Origin: Guillardia theta CCMP2712 | Taxonomy: Eukaryota; Protista; Cryptophyta | NCBI RefSeq assembly: GCF_000315625.1 | Contig: NW_005434608.1 | Location: forward strand, 381,747 to 445,746 | Direction of reading: 5' to 3' | Length of the DNA stretch: 64,000 nucleotides | Notes under the pieces: model-generated | Told to the model about the DNA's origin: nothing | Databases searched by the model: none | The model's input: the letters and a program-made list of their open reading frames with translations, nothing else | Part shown: positions 38,201-49,142 of the stretch, in pieces | Position numbering within the stretch: position 1 is the first letter of the stretch | How the letters are laid out: every line of letters starts with the position of its first letter | Made by a program: the position numbers and the translations under genes

Positions 38201-41200
38201 CTCTTACCAGCATGCGGTCCCCGATGATGATGAAGTTTGTGTTGACTCGGTGACGACGGATGAAGGCGAAAAAGCTGTCCAAGACTTGATTCGACTCGTT
38301 GGGCTGCTGATCTTTGGGCCTCGGGATCAACTGGTCCACGTCATCAAGGACGAAGCATCCTCCGATCGCCTGCGTCATCAACGTCTCCAGTCTTTGCGCC
38401 GGGTCCTTCTCCTTGAGAACGTCGAAGGTGCTCGCCTCAACAAACTTCGCCTCCTCGGATGCAAGCTGACACATGGAGCGGCCCAACAGCTTCCCAGCTG
38501 TAGTCTTCCCGGTCCCTCGGTTGCCGATGAGGAGGAGGCACTGAGAAGCATGAATGTGGTGCTTGATGGGCGAGTCCTTGTTGAGAAGCGCCTAACGCCA
38601 GCAGGTCACTCGTACGACTTGTCGCTGCCTCCGTTACCTTCTTGACATGCACCAGGGCATATCGTTTGAGCTCCGACAAGCCTTCTAGACCTATCAGCCT
38701 GCGAGGTAGCGTTAGATCCACAGGGAGCAGCGCAAGCATATTGTGCGCTTACTGGTCCAGCGACTCTGAAGTGAAGCCGTATGCAGTCTTGGCAGCTATC
38801 CATTCTTTCTCTTCTTGGGATGTCTTCTTCTCAAACAGCCGCAGGTCAGCAGTCAGAGGCTGCTCCTTGAGCTTTCTCAAGTTGTCTTGCTTGACAAGCT
38901 CATAGGTATCCGTGTGAACATTCAGGTGATGAAGAACCATCAGCGCACAAGCACTCTGAAGCTCTTCAGGCATGGTCAGATCGCTTGTTAGCAAAAAGTG
39001 GAGATAGTAGACGTAAAAGAAGTAGGGATCGATCACTATAGTCTTGTGCCTGATGACATCTTGGATGTAAATGTCGAGCTGCTTCTCGGCCTCGTCGATG
39101 CTGAATCCTCTTTCAATCAGCGAGCAGGCATAATAAATTCGAGCATCCATGTTTGTTTTGCACCCATCTCTGCACTTCTCCATGAACGGACGGTTGATGG
39201 CGTCTTGTGATGTGAGACGCAAAACATCTTCCCGTAATGACAAGATCTCTTCTGACAGCATCGGTTCAGCTCGAGAGAGAATGCTGCAAATAATCTTGGC
39301 CCTGTCATGATCTTTCAATCTCATGAAGAAATTTCCTTGCCGGATGGCATGATGTACATCTCTTTCTCTTCCGCCTGCCAGAAATATTCCATCTTCGAAC
39401 ATAGCTACACTCTGAAAGAAATGGTTTTCAGTCCAGATGTTTGCTCCAGCTTTTATGAGAGCATGTAACGACTTTTTCAACCCGGCCAGGCTCAAGTAGT
39501 GAGCTATAGTATTCCCAAATCGATCGCGCAGGTTCAGCATGTCAGCCATTGTCTTGATGACTCTGGTCATTTGACTTCCATCGTATTCTTCTCTCAACTG
39601 AGAATCTTCTGCTTCCATCGACTTCTGTATCGAATTGACTATCGCGTTGTTCTTCCGTTCGCTGCTGATCGCTCCGAAAGTTTGCATTCCTCTGCTCACG
39701 AGATGATTCTGCTCGGGCTGACGTTGGACCGACTTGTTCTCTCCCTGACTCACTGGCAGCACATCGAAGGCAGGAAAGGGAGGAAAGTCAGCAAATCTCG
39801 GTCGAGATCGAGTCGGAAGGGAAACAAGGCGAGAAGCGTCGACTGACTGAGTCGCTCCATTGATCTCCACCTTCCTCTCACTAGCTTCAAGCGTGTGCTC
39901 CTCCACCGAAAGTTTTCCCACTGAAAACTCAGAAAAGCTTTCGCACTGCCCTGTCAAACCCTGAGACAGAACAAGCACATACATGTTCTTCGATTCGGGC
40001 AATCTGTCCTGATTGGCATTCTTAGTCTGCACTCGTCTTGCGAGATCTCTGTCAAGACTGCAACAGCTGATGGCCTTCTTGTATTCATCGCAGGTAATGT
40101 AATCATTACACGCCGGCAAGGAATCAAAGATCTGGCTCACTTGATCCTGGTGGATTCTTTGCTGCAGGCTCTGGAAAAGAACTTCAGAGAGTACTCGTCC
40201 TTTGCGCTCTTTGTCAAGTCTGTTAAATTCGTAGTTGAGATCTGGAACATGAAAGTCAGGGCAGTTCTCTCGTGCCTCATCACACTGCACGCAAGAAGCT
40301 TGTTTCAAACTTGACACTCGTGAGCACTGCTTGCATCGATAAAAGGTTCGCAAGTTTCCACACATCTTGCAGCCTTTCATTCCCCGATTTCCAGAATATC
40401 CGCAGGAATCACACTTCCAAGTAGCGACATGTTTGCTGATGATCATTTGAGTCATCTTGTCGTAGTCATCGTGTCCCATCAAGATCGGACGAGAGCGAGC
40501 AAGCTTGAGTTTCATTCTCTTGCGATGCCACTCGATGAAGTACGCAAGCGCTTTTTCATCCGAAACAGTCTTCAACTCCCACAGTCGTGACCATGCTTGA
40601 AGCGTGACAAGACGAGTGATTTTCTCGACGTCGATCTCGCTGCTGACACCAAGTTTTGACAATGCTTCTATGAGCGACTTCTCATCGTCCTCGTCAAATT
40701 GAGCAGCATGGGAAGATTTGCACAAAGCGCTGGAGGGAAGTAAGCAAGGTCGTGAGCTTTTAAAGTCCATCCAGACGACTTGTACATTTCTCTGAATACT
40801 TTCGCGCATCACTCCGGCATGTACTACAACCCCAACAGCATTCTTGCCTACCTTGACAGTTTCTGGACTTCCCAATTGGACCACATCTCCTCGCCGAAAA
40901 ACGTTAGCATCTTCAGGTCTGAGATCTTTCCCATCGAAGAACTCTATCCTAAACGGATCTTCTTCTGCATAGACTGCGACGTTTTTCATTCCTTCTCCAT
41001 CAACATTGCCCAAGGAACATACGACAACTCCGACTTTTTGCTGAGTAGCAGTGCCTAAGACTGTAGAGTTCCCCTTATACTGGTGATCTAGTTGTACTCT
41101 GGTTCCGCCCTGCAAATAATCACACGGCACCAACAATATCGCCAGACCTCTGATTTTGCAGTTGATGCCGCCTGAATCATGCACATGTATTCTTACAACT

Positions 41201-42535
41201 TTTGCATCGCTGTTCGTAAGCATTGTGAAACTTTTGAGATCGTCAGACTTCGAAATCGGCAGCTTCAGTTTTCCCTCAGATCGAAGCTTTGATTGCACTT
41301 TCTTGGATGTCAAGACCTCAATTTGCTTCGGGCAATAACTATCATCGCTACCTTTAACAAACATTTGAACAGACTTGATGAGGTAGCCTTCGGCAATGTG
41401 AGCCTCAACCCAGTGCTCGCCAGAACGACCATCCGATTGCCAATATGTGGACTCATCTTGATCAAAGAGCCGGTCAAGTGTTGACGACTTACTTGAACTC
41501 TTCATGTCAATGACTCCTGCAGGACCTGAACAAGCAACGTGGAAAGTCAGAAAAGCCGGAGCCCGGCATTTGCAGCAATGTTATGTACAAACGTGGAAAT
41601 GAAAGCATCTGCATTCCCACTTAAAACTCCCATCCTGCTTGACTCACCACTAAAGCTTGAATCGTCGCTAGCGCTTGATTCTCCGCTAGAGCTTGATTCT
41701 CCGCTAGAGCTTGATTCCTCTGAGCCCTTGCTAGAGCTTGAGTCTGTGCTCGATTTATCTGTGCTCGATTTATCTGTGCTCGATTTATCTGTGCTCGATT
41801 TATCTGTGCTCGGGTTGTCTCCAGGCGAGATTGGCACATCTTCTGCTGGCATCCATCCAAACCTTGTTCCATCCGCAAAACTCAGATCCGATGCGGAGTA
41901 GGTGCAAATAGCGCCACTGAAACCAAATCAAACACGTCTCACACGCACAAACACGCGCACTTCTTTAACGACGCCACTTTGACCTGATAGTCTTGAGAAG
42001 CTCCTTGGACTTCAAGCAAGTGACGGCTGGTCTCTAGCACTATGCCATATCGATCTTCCTGTGAGAATCCCAGGCAGTGGTGAAAGTCTGCAGCACAGAA
42101 GGAAAGCTCAGCATCAACAGGTACTGATGACATGCGCTTCTTTGAACTCAGAACCACGAGGTCGCCAGCCTGAAAATCATCGAAATTTTCCAGAACCGTG
42201 TCTCCGACTGCTTCGTCCTCGACCTTAACATCGGATTCTTGCACAGAGCTTCTTGATTGCAAGAATTCAAGAAATGCTTCATCGGTCTGTTTGATAGATT
42301 CTTTGTTCAGAAACCACGTGATCTCGTCCTCCACAAACGTTAAACTCTGTTCTTCTGGATTACAGCCTTGAAAGCATTTTGCTAATTGCGTGGAGGTTGT
42401 CATGAAGCCGGCATTGGATTTCTTGACAAACAAGGTGGTGAGGTCGAGCTCGACTTCACCCTCGTTGCCGTCAAACTTGAAGTCTGCGATCTCGTCCAGC
42501 CGGAGCGACTCATGCCTCGACAGCGACGGCGGCAT
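35270..42535 (-). CDS. large multidomain protein: DOC/APC10 + SH3-like repeats + RanBP2-type zinc fingers + EF-hand-like + ankyrin + three SpoVK/CbbX-type AAA+ modules + Cys/His C-terminus
   Basis: DOC: LFDQDESTYWQSDG..HWV...DDSYCPK...GGINCKIRGL. Zinc fingers: WKCDSC...CKMC and YRCKQC...CVQC. Ankyrin: DRFGNTIAHYL...LIKAGANIW. Walker A GNRGTGKT, GNPGTGKT, GPPGTGKT; Walker B VLDDVD, FIDEAY, FVDEAY. Tail CPMDFEW...GYQCAGGSH. The ORFs are separated by short GT-AG introns. Confidence 0.85.
41655..41812. repeat. coding tandem repeats: 15-bp (TDKSS)n and 18-bp (ESSSSG)n
   Basis: CTCGATTTATCTGTG x4 and GCTTGATTCTCCGCTAGA x2-3, encoding a Ser-rich linker in the AAA+ gene. Confidence 0.9.
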
Positions 42536-42649
42536 GTCGGACCCCAGCAAAGCCGACGAGGTACAAAACGTGTCGAGTTGCGAAAAGAGGTTTTTTCATA
42601 GGAACAGAACGTGTCAAGAGGAACAGAACGTGTCATAGAGCGACTCGGC
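42536..42649. promoter_or_regulatory. putative compact bidirectional promoter with three AACGTGTC motifs
   Basis: 114 bp between divergent ATGs (42535 -, 42650 +). Direct repeat GGAACAGAACGTGTCA at 42601 and 42620, plus AAAACGTGTC at 42565. Confidence 0.55.
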
Positions 42650-45600
42650 ATGGGTTGCGGCGGAAGCGTCCATGCCACCTCCAGCCCGTCAGAGGTTCCG
42701 ATCGACGTGGCCACGAGTGAGTTTCCGCTGCATGCTAGGTTCCAAAGAGAGACCGCGTCCATCGCTGCAGCTGACATGAGCACGCTCAAGTCTACCAATC
42801 CAGCAATCTACCTGTGCAAGGGGCCTGATCGAAGCCTCCTGCACAAGCTGGAGATGAAGATGCGGTCGTCAGGGTTTTATGTCCTCGACATAGCAAACGT
42901 TCCCAAGGACGTGTTTTTGAGTCACTCGTGGCAGAACAAACTTGATGGGACCAGCACTCATGAACAAGTCAAACGAATTAGTATCGAACTAGAGAAGCGA
43001 GGATGGTCGACTTTCTTGGATGAGAATGACATGAAGCCTAATCTGAAATCTTGCATGGCTCAGGCGATAGAGCAGTCATATGTCGTGATCATCTTCTTGA
43101 CCAAGAGTTACATGGACAAGGTGAACAACGATGACGTCAACGACAATGTCTGCTTCGAGTATTCAGCGACTATCAGCCAAAAAGGCTCGGGAAGAATGTT
43201 TATCCCTGTCATTCTTGAAGAATTCGAAGTGAGAAAAGGGCTGCAGTTTCCCAAGGACTCGAAGGCATGGTATGGGCCCGTAGGAGCTGAGATCGGGAAG
43301 AGGAGGATGTACCTTGATTTCCTGAATTCCACAATGTTCGAGACCAACATGAATCGACTTGATCAAGCTCTGAAGGAGCTTGTTCCCATCAAGCACTCTC
43401 CAGCTGCCAAGATGTATAACACGATATCATCAGGAATCATGAGAAGCGATGTGGTCGTGATCTTTGTTGGCAAAGGGACCCTGCAATGTAGCACTGTGTC
43501 TGAGGAGTACATGGTGGCAGTCAGCATCCAGAGACCAGTGTTGCTGGTGATGTATGACAGAGATGTTTCGGTAGAAGAATGTACCCGCATGTTTCCTTCC
43601 AATCATGTTCTGAATCTGTCGGATAGCTCTTTGCAAGTGGGGGATCAGGGCTGGTCGGAAGCAGTTTATGCGAAAATTCTGCAGATCTATGAGCAAACGA
43701 ATGAAATTGACACGAATGCCACGTCAGCCGGGAGGTCTCAAGACCAATCAGAGCCAACAAGTAAACGAGATGTCGATGCAACAAGGTCTTTTTCAGTGGA
43801 AGAAGTTGTGGGATGTATTGGGGGCCGAATAGTTGCGTCAAGAATCGAGTTCAATGATTCTCATGTCATAGCACAAGGTGCGTGTGGTAGAGTTTATCGT
43901 GGAACACTGCAATCTATAGGCAATGTAGCTGTAAAAGTTCTCTCACCCATTAATGGCAAACCACCTAGCAAAGAGCAATATGATCAGCTTGTTAGAGAAG
44001 CAAAGATTCTCAGGGTAGTGCGATCGCCTTTTTTTGTTCAAATGCTCGGAGCCTGCAACATAGACGACGATAATGCTGACTCGACAGCAATTTTGGATTT
44101 CCGTTCAATCGTTTTCACCTTGTACGAGAACGGAACACTTCATCAGCATCTCTTCGATGCAAACTATAGCAAACTCCCTTGGAAGCTTCGACTGCAGATC
44201 TTGTGGCAAGGTCTTGCTACACTTGAGAGCTTTTGAAGCGACTGACTTGTATACAGCTGCCCGTGGACTGGTAGAGTTGCATAATCTTGGGGTTTATCAT
44301 CTAGATTTCAAGCCGGCGAATATCCTTCTTGATGAGAAGATGAACGCAAAGATTGGTGACTTCGGGCTCTCCAAGGTGATTCACAACCAGGCTGATACCA
44401 TGGACTCCCGACTGCTGCTTGCCATGTCAAGAACCCGCCATAGTGCAGCAGGCACAGGTCAAATCTTGCTTTGAAAAGCATTTTGCATACGTTGATGACT
44501 GGTGGATGTTGCAGACGGATACATGTGTCCCATTTACGTACAAACCAAGAGGATTTCACAGTACATCGATATCTACAGCTTCGGAGTGAGTTTGATGCAA
44601 ATCGTCCGCAAGGAGCATGCCGTCACTGGCGATCAAAAGCTGCTCACAGAGAAAGTTGCAGATGACGTTCGCACGAATGATTTGAGCCAGTGGAGGTATG
44701 ATCGGGAAGCAGACTGGGACGCCGGAACAGCGAGTGATATCACGTTGTTTGCGTTGCAATGTACAGACCTGAAGGAGAGCGAAAGACCTTCAGTCGAACA
44801 AATCCACATTCAACTTTCGTCCGCCCTCGGAGTGCATCAGCGCATCGATGACACACCATACCTGTTCATCCGAGTGAAGTTTGAAGGGCATCGGGAGCTA
44901 AAGAAAGTGTGTGTTAGCATCAACGCGGACCTTGACAGCGTGAGGGAGAAGCTGAGAAGTCAATTCAGACTCAACTGGAGGTCGTGTGAAAGTATCACGT
45001 TGAAAGGAAGGCGCTTGTCGGAACTGTTCATAATCAGGGACATGATGTCTCCGGGGTTCGACCCGAGCTTTGACGTCAAGACGGACACTCTTTATTTCCA
45101 GTCAAGCGTGCGGGCTGAACCAGAGCAAGTGGAGGAGAACAAGTCGAAGCAAGCAACGTCCATGAGCTCCAACAAGTCCATCAAGGCAAAGCATCGTCCC
45201 ATCCTAAGTGCATTGGCGATCGCTGCTGCTCCAGGTTCACCCCAGGAAATCAAAGAAACCATTGCGCCTTCTCTAGATATTCTATCGAGTGAAGGAATCA
45301 ACCTTAAAGATGTTTACGAGAAGATCTCACAAGGTAGCAGAGATGCTGAGAAATTGGCCCAAGGCTTATCAAAGAAAGAAAAATTGTACGTCATGCATAT
45401 TTTGGAGCTGCTGAAAAACAAAAATGCAAGAAAGATAGCAAAGCTTGCAGCTCGAGACATGCGCTCAGCTTTGTCTCAATCGGATTCATCGTCGGGTTCA
45501 CCGTCAAGCTCATCGTCAGAATCTGAATCAGAAAAGAAGGATAGTGGACAGGAGAAAACGAAGAAGAAAAAGAAGTATCAGATAGTCTATGAACGTTTCA

Positions 45601-48600
45601 AATCCTTCTGGGAGCGACTTGCCAAGATCGCGGCCCTCTCCCCCCCTCCCGAGGACCTTCTCCTCAAGCTGGAGCTGGACTACTTCGACAAGTCTGTCAT
45701 CCAAGACCTCGAGGCCGCCAACTGGTCCCTCCGAGAAGCCATCCAGCTCGTCTTGATCGAGGGCAAGCGAGACCTCGACGAGGTGGCTGGCGACGTCGAC
45801 GACAACAGCAAGGCGAAGCTTGGGCTGTTCTTGAAGGAAGTCGAGGCGCAGGAGGCTCGCCTGAGGGCCGCAGGAGAGTCGGAGCTGTTCAAGCCCTCCC
45901 AGCGCCCCTCCTCCTCTACCGAGAACAAGCTGCTGGCCAAGTACGACCGCGTGCTGCAGACCTTGGCGTGGCTGCTGGTCTCGCCGGACGCGGAGGGGAA
46001 GCAGAGCAAGGCAGCGGCGCTCCGAGAGCTCGTCGAGCCTCATCTCCTCCAGGATCGCCTCGACATCTTGACGGCGGCAGACGCGCTCGCCGTGGGCACG
46101 AGGAGCAAGGAAGCTCTCACCGCCGGCAAGTCGGAGGCTGAAGCTCTGCTCATCGACAGGCTGCTCGAGCATGTCCACGCGGGGGTCAATGACCTCTCCT
46201 CGCGGCGAGCGAAGCACAACCTCGACGTGCTGGAGGCTCTGGGCAAGAAGGAAGACGCCTGGAGCGAGCAGTCGGCTTTGGGTATCAAGCAAGCGAAGAA
46301 GCACGACCTGCTATGGAAGCGCTTTGTGCAGCTGGTGCTGAAGCCGTCAGAAGCGAGCAAGTCACGGTATCGGATCTGCTCTGGGAGCCAAGAGGACGAG
46401 ATGAAGTGTATCTTTGATGACATCTTACCTCGCATGGAGAAGTGTGGGTGGGACATTCGGATCCCTCTGATCAGGTTTCGAGAGGGTGAAACTGACAGAA
46501 CTCGGTTTCTTGCAACAGTGACGGACAAGAATGATTTGCAACTGCTGGAGTATGTGTTTGATAACTACATTGCCAGTCATCTACCTCAAAGCTCTAGCTC
46601 GGTCTTTCACTGTGACAGTAGCATTGCATGGTTCTCTCTGCAACAATTCACTCTTCTGTCCTGTGTTGCTCAGCTAAGCAGCCAGGACTTGTTTGACAGG
46701 AGTGATTTCAGGCTGGCTCATCAAACTCTCCATGAAGTTCGTCGTATGTATATGGATCAGCTTTTACGTGCTACAGCAGACAACTATACCTCCTTGATCC
46801 CCAAAGTTGAGAAATTCTGGGATGGAGTGCGTGATGAAAATGTCTTGATCTCAGATCTTGACGCTGACGAGGCAGCACTGATGAACATCCTTCTTCGATT
46901 GCATACTGCTTTCTCCCAGAGCTCAGCCGACAGACAGGCGTCAATCAATGCGATTCTAAAAGATCTCCTGCCCAAGAATGAAATCGAGGTTTGTTTGTGT
47001 AGCTGATACGAATATCAAAGCATATGAAGCTCCTGTTGGGCAGGTGTTGATCGTTGGGTGGGCGTGTGTAGATGATTCGAGAGACCTGAAAGTTAAACAA
47101 AACTTGCGGGACAGGATAATATTTTACATCCTCAATCAAGCGACCTCGGACTCATTCCCTGAAGAGCTTGAGGTATATGAGACAAAGTCTCAACCCCTAG
47201 CTTGACTGCGTTGATTGTCGACAGGATGCTTTGGATCAACTGCTAGCCGTCCATGTTGTTACTGAAGCTTCAATGTTGTCGTCGCAAAGGTTTTTCATGA
47301 ATTCGCTCATTTGTCCTTGTCAGGAATAGACTAGATGGCAATCATGCTAAGTTTTTGCGGCAAGTCATGATATGCATAAAAAACATCAGCCCATCTTTGC
47401 TCAAGGTAAGAAAGCATGATACAGATCTCCGAACACATAGCAGTGGTGCAGGAAGCTGTGGACAACAGCACTCAAGTTGCGATCAAAACCAACATGTTGA
47501 CGGAGAGTGCATATGAAAAGACTTTTCGCTCGAAAGAAGACGCTTTTCGTCGTGCTGCTCAGGTGATTTGGCTACTGAGGTGTTCCACCCTCAAGATCAC
47601 ATGGAGCTGAACACATTGCGACAGCTCTGTGATGCAGATTGCGCCGAGAGATATAAGACAGAGAGGATGTTTCCAGGTGCGTGTACTTTCATTCACCTCA
47701 CGACAGTCATGTTTCAACATCAGGCACATTGGAGAGGGAGCGAGAACTGATGATTTCTCACTTCTTTGAGGTGAGGAGATGCTAGCATAGATTTAACCAT
47801 GTCGGCACTGAGTTTCAACATCTGCAGCCGATGAAGGAAAAGTTAGGGTCTGGCATCACAGACGCGATTAAGAAGATGTGGAATGGAACGCTATCTCTCT
47901 CTAAACTCTGCGAAGGTCAGAACATACGGGCCTTGCTCCTTCTTGCCACCTGAACCTGCGCTTTCAGATCTTAAGGATACCAAACACGTTGGGGCGAGAT
48001 TCAGCATTTGGAAAACCATCAAATTCACAAAACAATATGGTTTGAAAGATTCAACATGTGCAGATCCAGATAAAGGCGAGATCATCTACTACAACGACGA
48101 GACAGAACAAGAAGAGGATGAGGGGAATGATATTTGGACCCGATTCAAATCCTTCTGGGAGCGACTGGCCAAGATCGCGGCCCTCTCCCCCCCTCCCGAG
48201 GACCTTCTCCTCAAGCTGGAGCTGGACTACTTCGACAAGTCTGTCATCCAAGACCTCGAGGCCGCCAACTGGTCCCTCCGAGAAGCCATCCAGCTCGTCT
48301 TGATCGAGGGCAAGCGAGACCTCGACGAGGTGGCTGGCGACGTCGACGACAACAGCAAGGCGAAGCTCGGGCTGTTCTTGAAGGAAGTCGAGGCGCAGGA
48401 GGCTCGCCTGAGGGCCGCAGGAGAGTCGGAGCTGTTCAAGCCCTCCCAGCGCCCCTCCTCCTCTACCGAGAACAAGCTGCTGGCCAAGTACGACCGCGTG
48501 CTGCAGACCTTGGCGTGGCTGCTGGTCTCGCCGGACGCGGAGGGGAAGCAGAGCAAGGCAGCGGCGCTCCGAGAGCTCGTCGAGCCTCATCTCCTCCAGG

Positions 48601-49142
48601 ATCGCCTCGACATCTTGACGGCGGCAGACGCGCTCGCCGTGGGCACGAGGAGCAAGGAAGCTCTCACCGCCGGCAAGTCGGAGGCTGAAGCTCTGCTCAT
48701 CGACAGGCTGCTCGAGCATGTCCACGCGGGGGTCAATGACCTCTCCTCGCGGCGAGCGAAGCACAACCTCGACGTGCTGGAGGCTCTGGGCAAGAAGGAA
48801 GACGCCTGGAGCGAGCAGTCGGCTTTGGGTATCAGGCAAGCGAAGAAGCACGACCTGCTATGGAAGCGCTTTGTGCAGCTGGTGCTGAAGCCGTCAGAAG
48901 CGAGCAAGTCGCGGTATCGGATCTGCTCTGGGAGCCAAGAGGACGAGATGAGGTGTATCTTTGATGACATCTTACCTCGCATGGAGCAAGACGGGTGGGA
49001 CATTCGGATCCCTCTGATCAGGTTTCGTGATGGGAAAAGAACGAAAGATGATTTGATTCAGGGCATTGAAGACCCTCTTGATGTACAACTGCTGGAGTAT
49101 GTGTTTGATACATACTTTGCAACCTCTGTCTGCGAGAATTGA
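42650..49142 (+). CDS. TIR-TIR - IRAK/Pelle-like Ser/Thr kinase - PB1/ubiquitin-like - helical repeat protein, multi-exon
   Basis: MGCGGS N-terminus. [11 protein letters not shown]...FLDE...[19 protein letters not shown]...CFEY. Kinase [60 protein letters not shown]. Introns at about 44211-44256 and 44457-44514 join the ORFs; exons continue to 49142. Confidence 0.87.
45597..46480 (+). repeat. copy 1 of an approximately 884-bp near-identical intragenic duplication
   Basis: Matches 48144-49027 at a constant offset of 2547 with only about 10 substitutions seen by eye. Confidence 0.97.
48144..49027 (+). repeat. copy 2 of the approximately 884-bp intragenic duplication
   Basis: Matches 45597-46480. 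Confidence 0.97.

Follow-up and report, generated by a model that had tools for sequence, protein, structure and literature searches.

The gene described here, from the cryptophyte Guillardia theta CCMP2712, encodes a complete TIR domain lying between two further conserved pieces, and the downstream one of these (the C piece) is the alphaB-to-alphaE remainder of a TIR, without betaA-alphaA-betaB. Of several possible explanations for this layout, we favour, with moderate confidence, a nested architecture in which the 29 residues upstream of the complete TIR (the N piece) form one fold together with the C piece, with one TIR enclosed in another. The C side of the insert belongs to a parent TIR-like domain, and the N side is predicted from the structure model to belong to the same parent. 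All positions are those of the window, the whole stretch of 64,000 nucleotides of contig NW_005434608.1 that was analysed.

The gene and its complete inner TIR

A single uninterrupted frame, the ORF at 42611-44236 on the plus strand, holds the N piece, the inner TIR, the C piece and the start of a kinase. The encoded order is an MGCGGS start, the N piece, the inner complete TIR, the C piece and a protein kinase, and all three pieces of the TIR head are free of introns within this ORF. The features are as follows.

42650..42667, plus strand: start codon (ATG read in the sequence) and MGCGGS motif, a putative N-myristoylation/palmitoylation membrane anchor
42668..42802, plus strand: linker from the anchor to the first structured element, of low model confidence
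42803..42889, plus strand: N piece, 29 residues, proposed betaA-alphaA-betaB of an outer split TIR-like domain (AlphaFold, conservation)
42890..42907, plus strand: N-side linker IANVPK, 6 residues (homologue alignments)
42908..43384, plus strand: inner complete TIR domain (Pfam TIR_2 and AlphaFold)
43157..43159, plus strand: Glu170 of the inner TIR (CFEY) at the alphaC catalytic position (alignment column E130)
43385..43399, plus strand: C-side linker of about 5 residues from inner alphaE to outer alphaB (secondary-structure break at model residues 205-210)
43400..43696, plus strand: C piece, alphaB-betaC-alphaC-betaD-alphaD-betaE-alphaE of the proposed outer TIR-like domain (Pfam, HHalign, AlphaFold)
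43505..43507, plus strand: Glu286 of the proposed outer domain (SEEY) at the alphaC position (HHalign)
43856..44805, plus strand: protein kinase domain in three exons (Pfam on three consecutive ORFs)
about 44211-44256, plus strand: first kinase intron (splice sites read by eye)
ending at 44514, donor approximate, plus strand: second kinase intron (splice sites read by eye)

The pattern MGxxxS is an N-myristoylation signal, here with an adjoining palmitoylated cysteine, and going by this consensus MGCGGS is a probable membrane anchor by N-myristoylation and palmitoylation. The closest protein relatives come from Hanusia phi, which we take to be another cryptophyte, and its corresponding protein begins with MGCGFS. 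The linker behind the anchor is poorly conserved in the alignment with Hanusia and is predicted by AlphaFold to be without secondary structure (pLDDT 40-49; the modelled part begins at 42770).

The middle stretch had been read as a complete TIR in the first-pass annotation, and this was borne out. It matches Pfam TIR_2 (PF13676) over profile positions 1-98 of 122 with 51.6-60.5 bits, against a cut-off of 28 (E 1.6e-13 for the 51.6-bit match), and in an AlphaFold model of the head, built with a 60-sequence alignment, it reaches a pLDDT of >90 over most of its length. The predicted model of this part is a flavodoxin-like five-strand fold that the structure search superposes on solved TIRs. Among 1.84 billion representative proteins there are 1369 relatives, nearly all of which match the inner TIR stretch only, and a metagenome scan returned two ordinary TIR loci and nothing else. 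A second claim, that both TIRs keep a glutamate in alphaC, holds as well: in the 60-sequence alignment of inner TIRs, the column of Glu170 (E130) reaches a conservation of at least 90%, while HHalign puts Glu286 opposite the TIR family glutamate, and Glu286 is present in each of the five homologues whose sequence extends over the C piece. The predicted-structure clusters nearest to the inner TIR in the ESM Atlas are TIR_2 proteins of giant viruses (Nucleocytoviricota) of 311-348 residues, which seem to be without the nested layout, since it is the inner TIR alone that aligns.

The kinase is recognised by Pfam (Pkinase/PK_Tyr_Ser-Thr) on the ORFs 42611-44236, 44073-44474 and 44502-47006, which cover profile positions 3-90, 105-154 and 161-257, respectively. 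It carries HLD in place of HRD and is thus of the non-RD type. Within 44372-44516, a donor right after GDFGLSK leaves an activation loop of about 6 residues, and one near 44443 or 44457 gives a loop of normal length. Because the early donor leaves so short a loop, the actual length of the second kinase intron is probably less than a first inspection suggests.

The two flanking pieces

That the remainder of a TIR follows the inner domain had also been claimed at first sight, and the evidence agrees, as the matches to ThsB_TIR, to TIR_2 and in HHalign are all confined to the alphaB-to-alphaE part. By itself, the C piece matches Pfam ThsB_TIR (PF08937) at positions 45-97 of 100 with 21 bits, just below the cut-off of 21.2. 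With 18 upstream residues added, positions 26-97 are matched with 25.2 bits, above the cut-off, and the whole ORF scores up to 26.7 bits (positions 24-97). The match to TIR_2 (positions 35-95 of 122, and 37-95 with the C piece by itself) is below the cut-off. HHalign places the C piece on columns 47-155 of a 126-sequence TIR profile with a probability of 89-93% (E 3e-7 to 2e-6), its protein-language-model features are nearest to TIR_2/ThsB clusters of the Atlas (0.94), and the equivalent region of a homologue (P0151) matches the TIR-like DUF4062 in Pfam. Neither the 350-residue head nor the C piece found a match in word-index protein searches, and a tblastn search of the C piece against plasmids, which sought ThsB-like sequences for a generic profile, gave one chance match only.

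In the AlphaFold model the C piece consists of helices at residues 211-225, 241-252, 268-274 and 294-309, alternating with strands at 229-233, 257-261 and 279-282, at a pLDDT of 64-83. It is set off from the inner TIR by the C-side linker, with a pLDDT of about 52 in the block after residues 205-210. The C piece likely folds, as the TIR core pattern and the alphaC glutamate persist between lineages that have only 25% identity there. If it does so without a central strand of its own, betaA and betaB are needed from elsewhere.

A candidate source is the N piece, which had been claimed to be the beta-alpha-beta of a TIR. Part of this claim stands: the piece is conserved, is predicted as strand-helix-strand (model residues 12-14, 21-33 and 37-39) and adjoins the insert through a conserved linker of 6 residues, as a domain insertion requires. 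The motif VPK or KPK directly before the inner TIR is conserved in the alignments with homologues. However, the N piece shows no significant similarity to TIR N-termini. Used alone, it finds nothing above chance in Pfam, PADLOC, NCBIfam, PDB sequences or Atlas features.

We also deleted the inner TIR in silico and aligned the resulting N+C chimera with profiles built from fetched sequences. Against an uninterrupted TIR repeat (P0108), the chimera gives one local alignment that runs through the junction in register and locates the break within the BB loop. It reaches a Smith-Waterman score of 62, which is 15 more than the C piece alone (47), and 3 of 1000 shuffles of the N piece did as well, as did 4 of 150 in a profile version of the comparison (p about 0.003-0.03). 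Over 147 TIR-containing targets, however, score gains are at least as frequent with a reversed or shuffled N piece as with the real one, and the gain with P0108, the best of the 147, therefore counts as one match among many tests. The N piece likewise adds no score against the 126-sequence inner-type TIR profile. An HMM-type search after removal of the inner TIR, which the first-pass annotation had put forward as a check on nesting, thus gives the N piece no significant link to TIRs when every target and control is taken into account.

The model of the whole head has a mean pLDDT of 79.6 and a pTM of 0.64; from the single sequence, with no alignment, the pLDDT is 34.8. By a rough estimate, a pTM of about 0.5 would be expected if the 160-residue inner domain alone were confidently placed, and the value for the model lies above this. 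Read together, the flanks follow the canonical TIR order in the model, beta-alpha-beta before the insert and alpha-beta-alpha-beta-alpha-beta-alpha after it. Structure prediction, proposed as a further check, hence agrees with nesting in the order of the elements, but it places the N piece at a pLDDT of only 49-66 (two sequences cover this region in the input alignment), and the structure matches are confined to the inner TIR: searches with PDB VIA-align, PDB Foldseek and the ESM Atlas gave no match spanning the N and C pieces, all lying at about model residues 43-208. The original proposal of a TIR inserted into the BB loop of another is accordingly sustained on the C side, which is TIR, and by the position of the break in the P0108 alignment, whereas the N side is predicted only.

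Relatives and competing explanations

The layout recurs in relatives from at least two distant lineages, on the N side in Hanusia phi and on both sides in a GC-rich eukaryote, and because it is kept across lineages that share only 25-45% identity, the layout is not a one-off accident. A Hanusia phi fragment in EukProt (P0034) begins at the MGCG start, continues through the N piece (45% identity) and breaks off 40 residues into the inner TIR. The EukProt Hanusia set is presumably transcriptome-derived; in that case mRNA contains the N piece joined to the inner TIR, and this joint is no intron artefact. The second group consists of contigs of a GC-rich eukaryote (60-63% G+C; one sample from Tara Oceans), with the loci L001/L002, L005-L008, L009 and L010 representing three related gene versions. 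Here the inner TIR and the C piece share one ORF, the kinase comes next, and a similarly built N piece precedes the inner TIR. In the window, as in four independent contigs, the reading frame is unbroken from the inner TIR into the C piece, and the N piece was found in every homologue for which the N-terminal side was available (Hanusia P0034, L001, L005, L009 and L010). Identity between the window protein and the GC-rich lineage is 25-29% for the N piece, 44-45% for the inner TIR and 25% for the C piece. A relative with an uninterrupted outer-type TIR was not found among the homologues.

Within the GC-rich lineage, a small second exon was proposed in L001, L005 and L009, and this is confirmed by L010, where the N piece is one continuous stretch. 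A conserved phase-1 donor, AAAG|GTGA, closes the small exon (L001 505-565; L005 3600-3665), whereas the inner-TIR exon of these two loci is preceded by a single good acceptor, in phase 0, and an extra micro-exon is possible. A conserved region of about 200 residues precedes the N piece in these homologues (L005 2665-3384; L009 320-1138; L001 2-379). It takes the place of the cryptophyte MGCG anchor and gives a weak, sub-threshold SAM-like match; together with the TIR, such a region would recall the SAM-then-TIR order of SARM1.

The main rival to nesting is a tandem of TIRs with a decayed second copy. The C piece would then have lost its first beta-alpha-beta and would now be a linker, or pack against the inner TIR or the kinase, and the N piece would be an unrelated small conserved element. 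We regard this as doubtful, though several points favour it: tandem TIRs are known, for example in mollusc Tolls (PMC4929906), the outer pieces evolve faster than the inner TIR (25-29% vs 44% identity), and no TIR N-terminus is significantly similar to the N piece. A three-strand remnant without a central strand should, however, lose both the TIR core and the alphaC glutamate at 25% identity, and both are kept. The regular alpha/beta structure predicted for the C piece (pLDDT 64-83) and the beta-alpha-beta predicted for the N piece also speak against decay, as does the constant presence of the N piece with the module, on a short conserved linker.

It is quite improbable, in our judgement, that the N piece is instead an extra beta-alpha-beta that extends or caps the sheet of the inner TIR, with the C piece completed by a partner molecule (domain swap) or by the kinase region. 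Some structure alignments do begin inside the N piece (model ranges 29-206, 30-209, 21-205 and 3-204), but such ranges give first and last residues only and are weak evidence. None of the 126 inner-type TIR relatives has an extension of this kind, and the stretch from the C piece to the kinase offers no candidate beta-alpha-beta. Still more remote is an artefact of the gene model, where two separate proteins look like a nested one because an in-frame intron went unnoticed or because adjacent genes were fused. The genome has many short introns, and RNA reads from the source organism are lacking over the locus: the sole RNA run, labelled another species, gave four weak reads, and the runs that contain the stretch are DNA contigs with introns. 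Yet the ORF is uninterrupted, the alignment to homologues has no unmatched block of intron size, and the kinase adjoins the shared ORF of inner TIR and C piece in the homologous contigs. We reject a hidden intron because of these continuous ORFs in relatives and because the Hanusia fragment spans the anchor, the N piece and the start of the inner TIR.

Proposed working, known systems and genomic surroundings

Under the nested reading, the gene product would be a signalling protein attached to the membrane by its lipid anchor, with two TIR-type domains in its head, one nested in the other. The outer of these, divergent and ThsB/TIR_2-like, would be interrupted in the BB loop, where betaB leads into alphaB, by the complete inner TIR, which is SARM1-like. 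The helix and both strands missing from the C piece would be supplied by the N piece, and the outer domain could then reach a five-stranded flavodoxin-like TIR fold whose BB-loop face carries the inner TIR. We suggest that this double head may act as an assembly (oligomerising) module, possibly one that also cleaves NAD, and that it may switch the non-RD kinase fused directly behind it, which would unite adaptor and kinase in one chain.

TIRs signal by assembly through the BB loop, and NAD-cleaving TIRs form their active site only on assembly. For SARM1 and for the TIRs of plants and bacteria it is established that the active site opens when the BB loop of one TIR meets the E surface of its neighbour. 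In the nested protein, the BB-loop stumps of the outer domain would be fixed to the betaA/alphaE end of the inner TIR and so mimic the contact between BB loop and E surface; such mimicry within one chain may be geometrically reasonable. The dimer, pre-formed or gated, that the first-pass annotation had suggested would be of this kind. One may go further and propose that the nested pair amounts to a head-to-tail TIR dimer, formed in advance by covalent linkage, that is membrane-gated or works as a self-contained generator of a nucleotide signal that drives the fused kinase. We offer this as speculation and think it rather unlikely. If true, a pre-formed dimer would be a new solution to TIR activation, common to cryptophytes and at least one other lineage of marine eukaryotes.

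The NAD-cleaving TIR of animal SARM1/TIR-1 shares only about 17% identity with the inner TIR. The inner TIR, a candidate NADase, differs further in sitting between the halves of another TIR-like domain, followed by a kinase. The best profile matches of the C piece are to ThsB, DUF1863 and DUF4062 (Thoeris and relatives), which have a similar G-x-x-T ... E pattern after betaC. Only positions 24-97 of the ThsB-type profile are matched, however, and for the first third one would have to turn to the N piece, which lies 165 residues upstream; moreover, ThsB belongs to a bacterial defence operon, whereas the window protein is eukaryotic and multidomain.

In animals MyD88 and IRAK are separate proteins, and TRAM has an N-terminal myristoylation signal. 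The window protein resembles this set in a TIR with adaptor function, an IRAK/Pelle-like non-RD kinase and a TRAM-like myristoylation signal, here all on one chain. It differs in being without a death domain, in the covalent joining of TIR and kinase and in having two TIR-type domains. The resemblance to animal Toll signalling would be one of logic, and homology of the pathways is not implied. If the interpretation is true, direct fusion of TIRs with an IRAK-like kinase occurs in protists, beyond the animals and plants.

The extended TIR of TEP1 (TeTIR) carries insertions, including an extended BB-loop region with a helix, and keeps an active NADase, which indicates that the BB loop tolerates insertion together with NADase activity (bioRxiv 10.64898/2026.09.21.753143). 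The inserts in TeTIR are single secondary-structure elements, in contrast to the whole autonomous TIR of about 160 residues found here. Mollusc Toll receptors carry tandem TIRs (PMC4929906) and likewise have two per polypeptide, but these are complete and consecutive, whereas the second TIR of the window protein would be split around the first. In the full-text literature we found tandem TIRs and small loop insertions, and no TIR described as split, nested, interrupted or inserted within another TIR. If the nested reading is true, the protein is a ready-made test object for the relation between TIR-pair geometry and activity and for the insertion tolerance of the BB loop.

Several features of the surrounding DNA were noted. 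The helical C-terminal part of the same gene contains a direct duplication (45594-45893 and 48141-48440; 300 bases by repeat search, 99% identity, spacing 2547 bases), which by ORF translations runs on to about 1 kb, about 330 residues being nearly the same in the ORFs 44502-47006 and 47883-49142. Either a recent segmental duplication or an artefact of assembly could account for it. Upstream lies a divergent neighbour on the minus strand, an ORF of 918 residues at 38749-41505 in which an N-terminal DOC/discoidin-type-like stretch and zinc-finger-like CxxC...CxxC motifs were recognised by eye. Between the two divergent genes, in what is either intergenic sequence or a 5' region, a short tandem coding-like repeat occupies 41547-41852, with units reading SSTDK on the minus strand and LELDSP/LSVLD on the plus strand.
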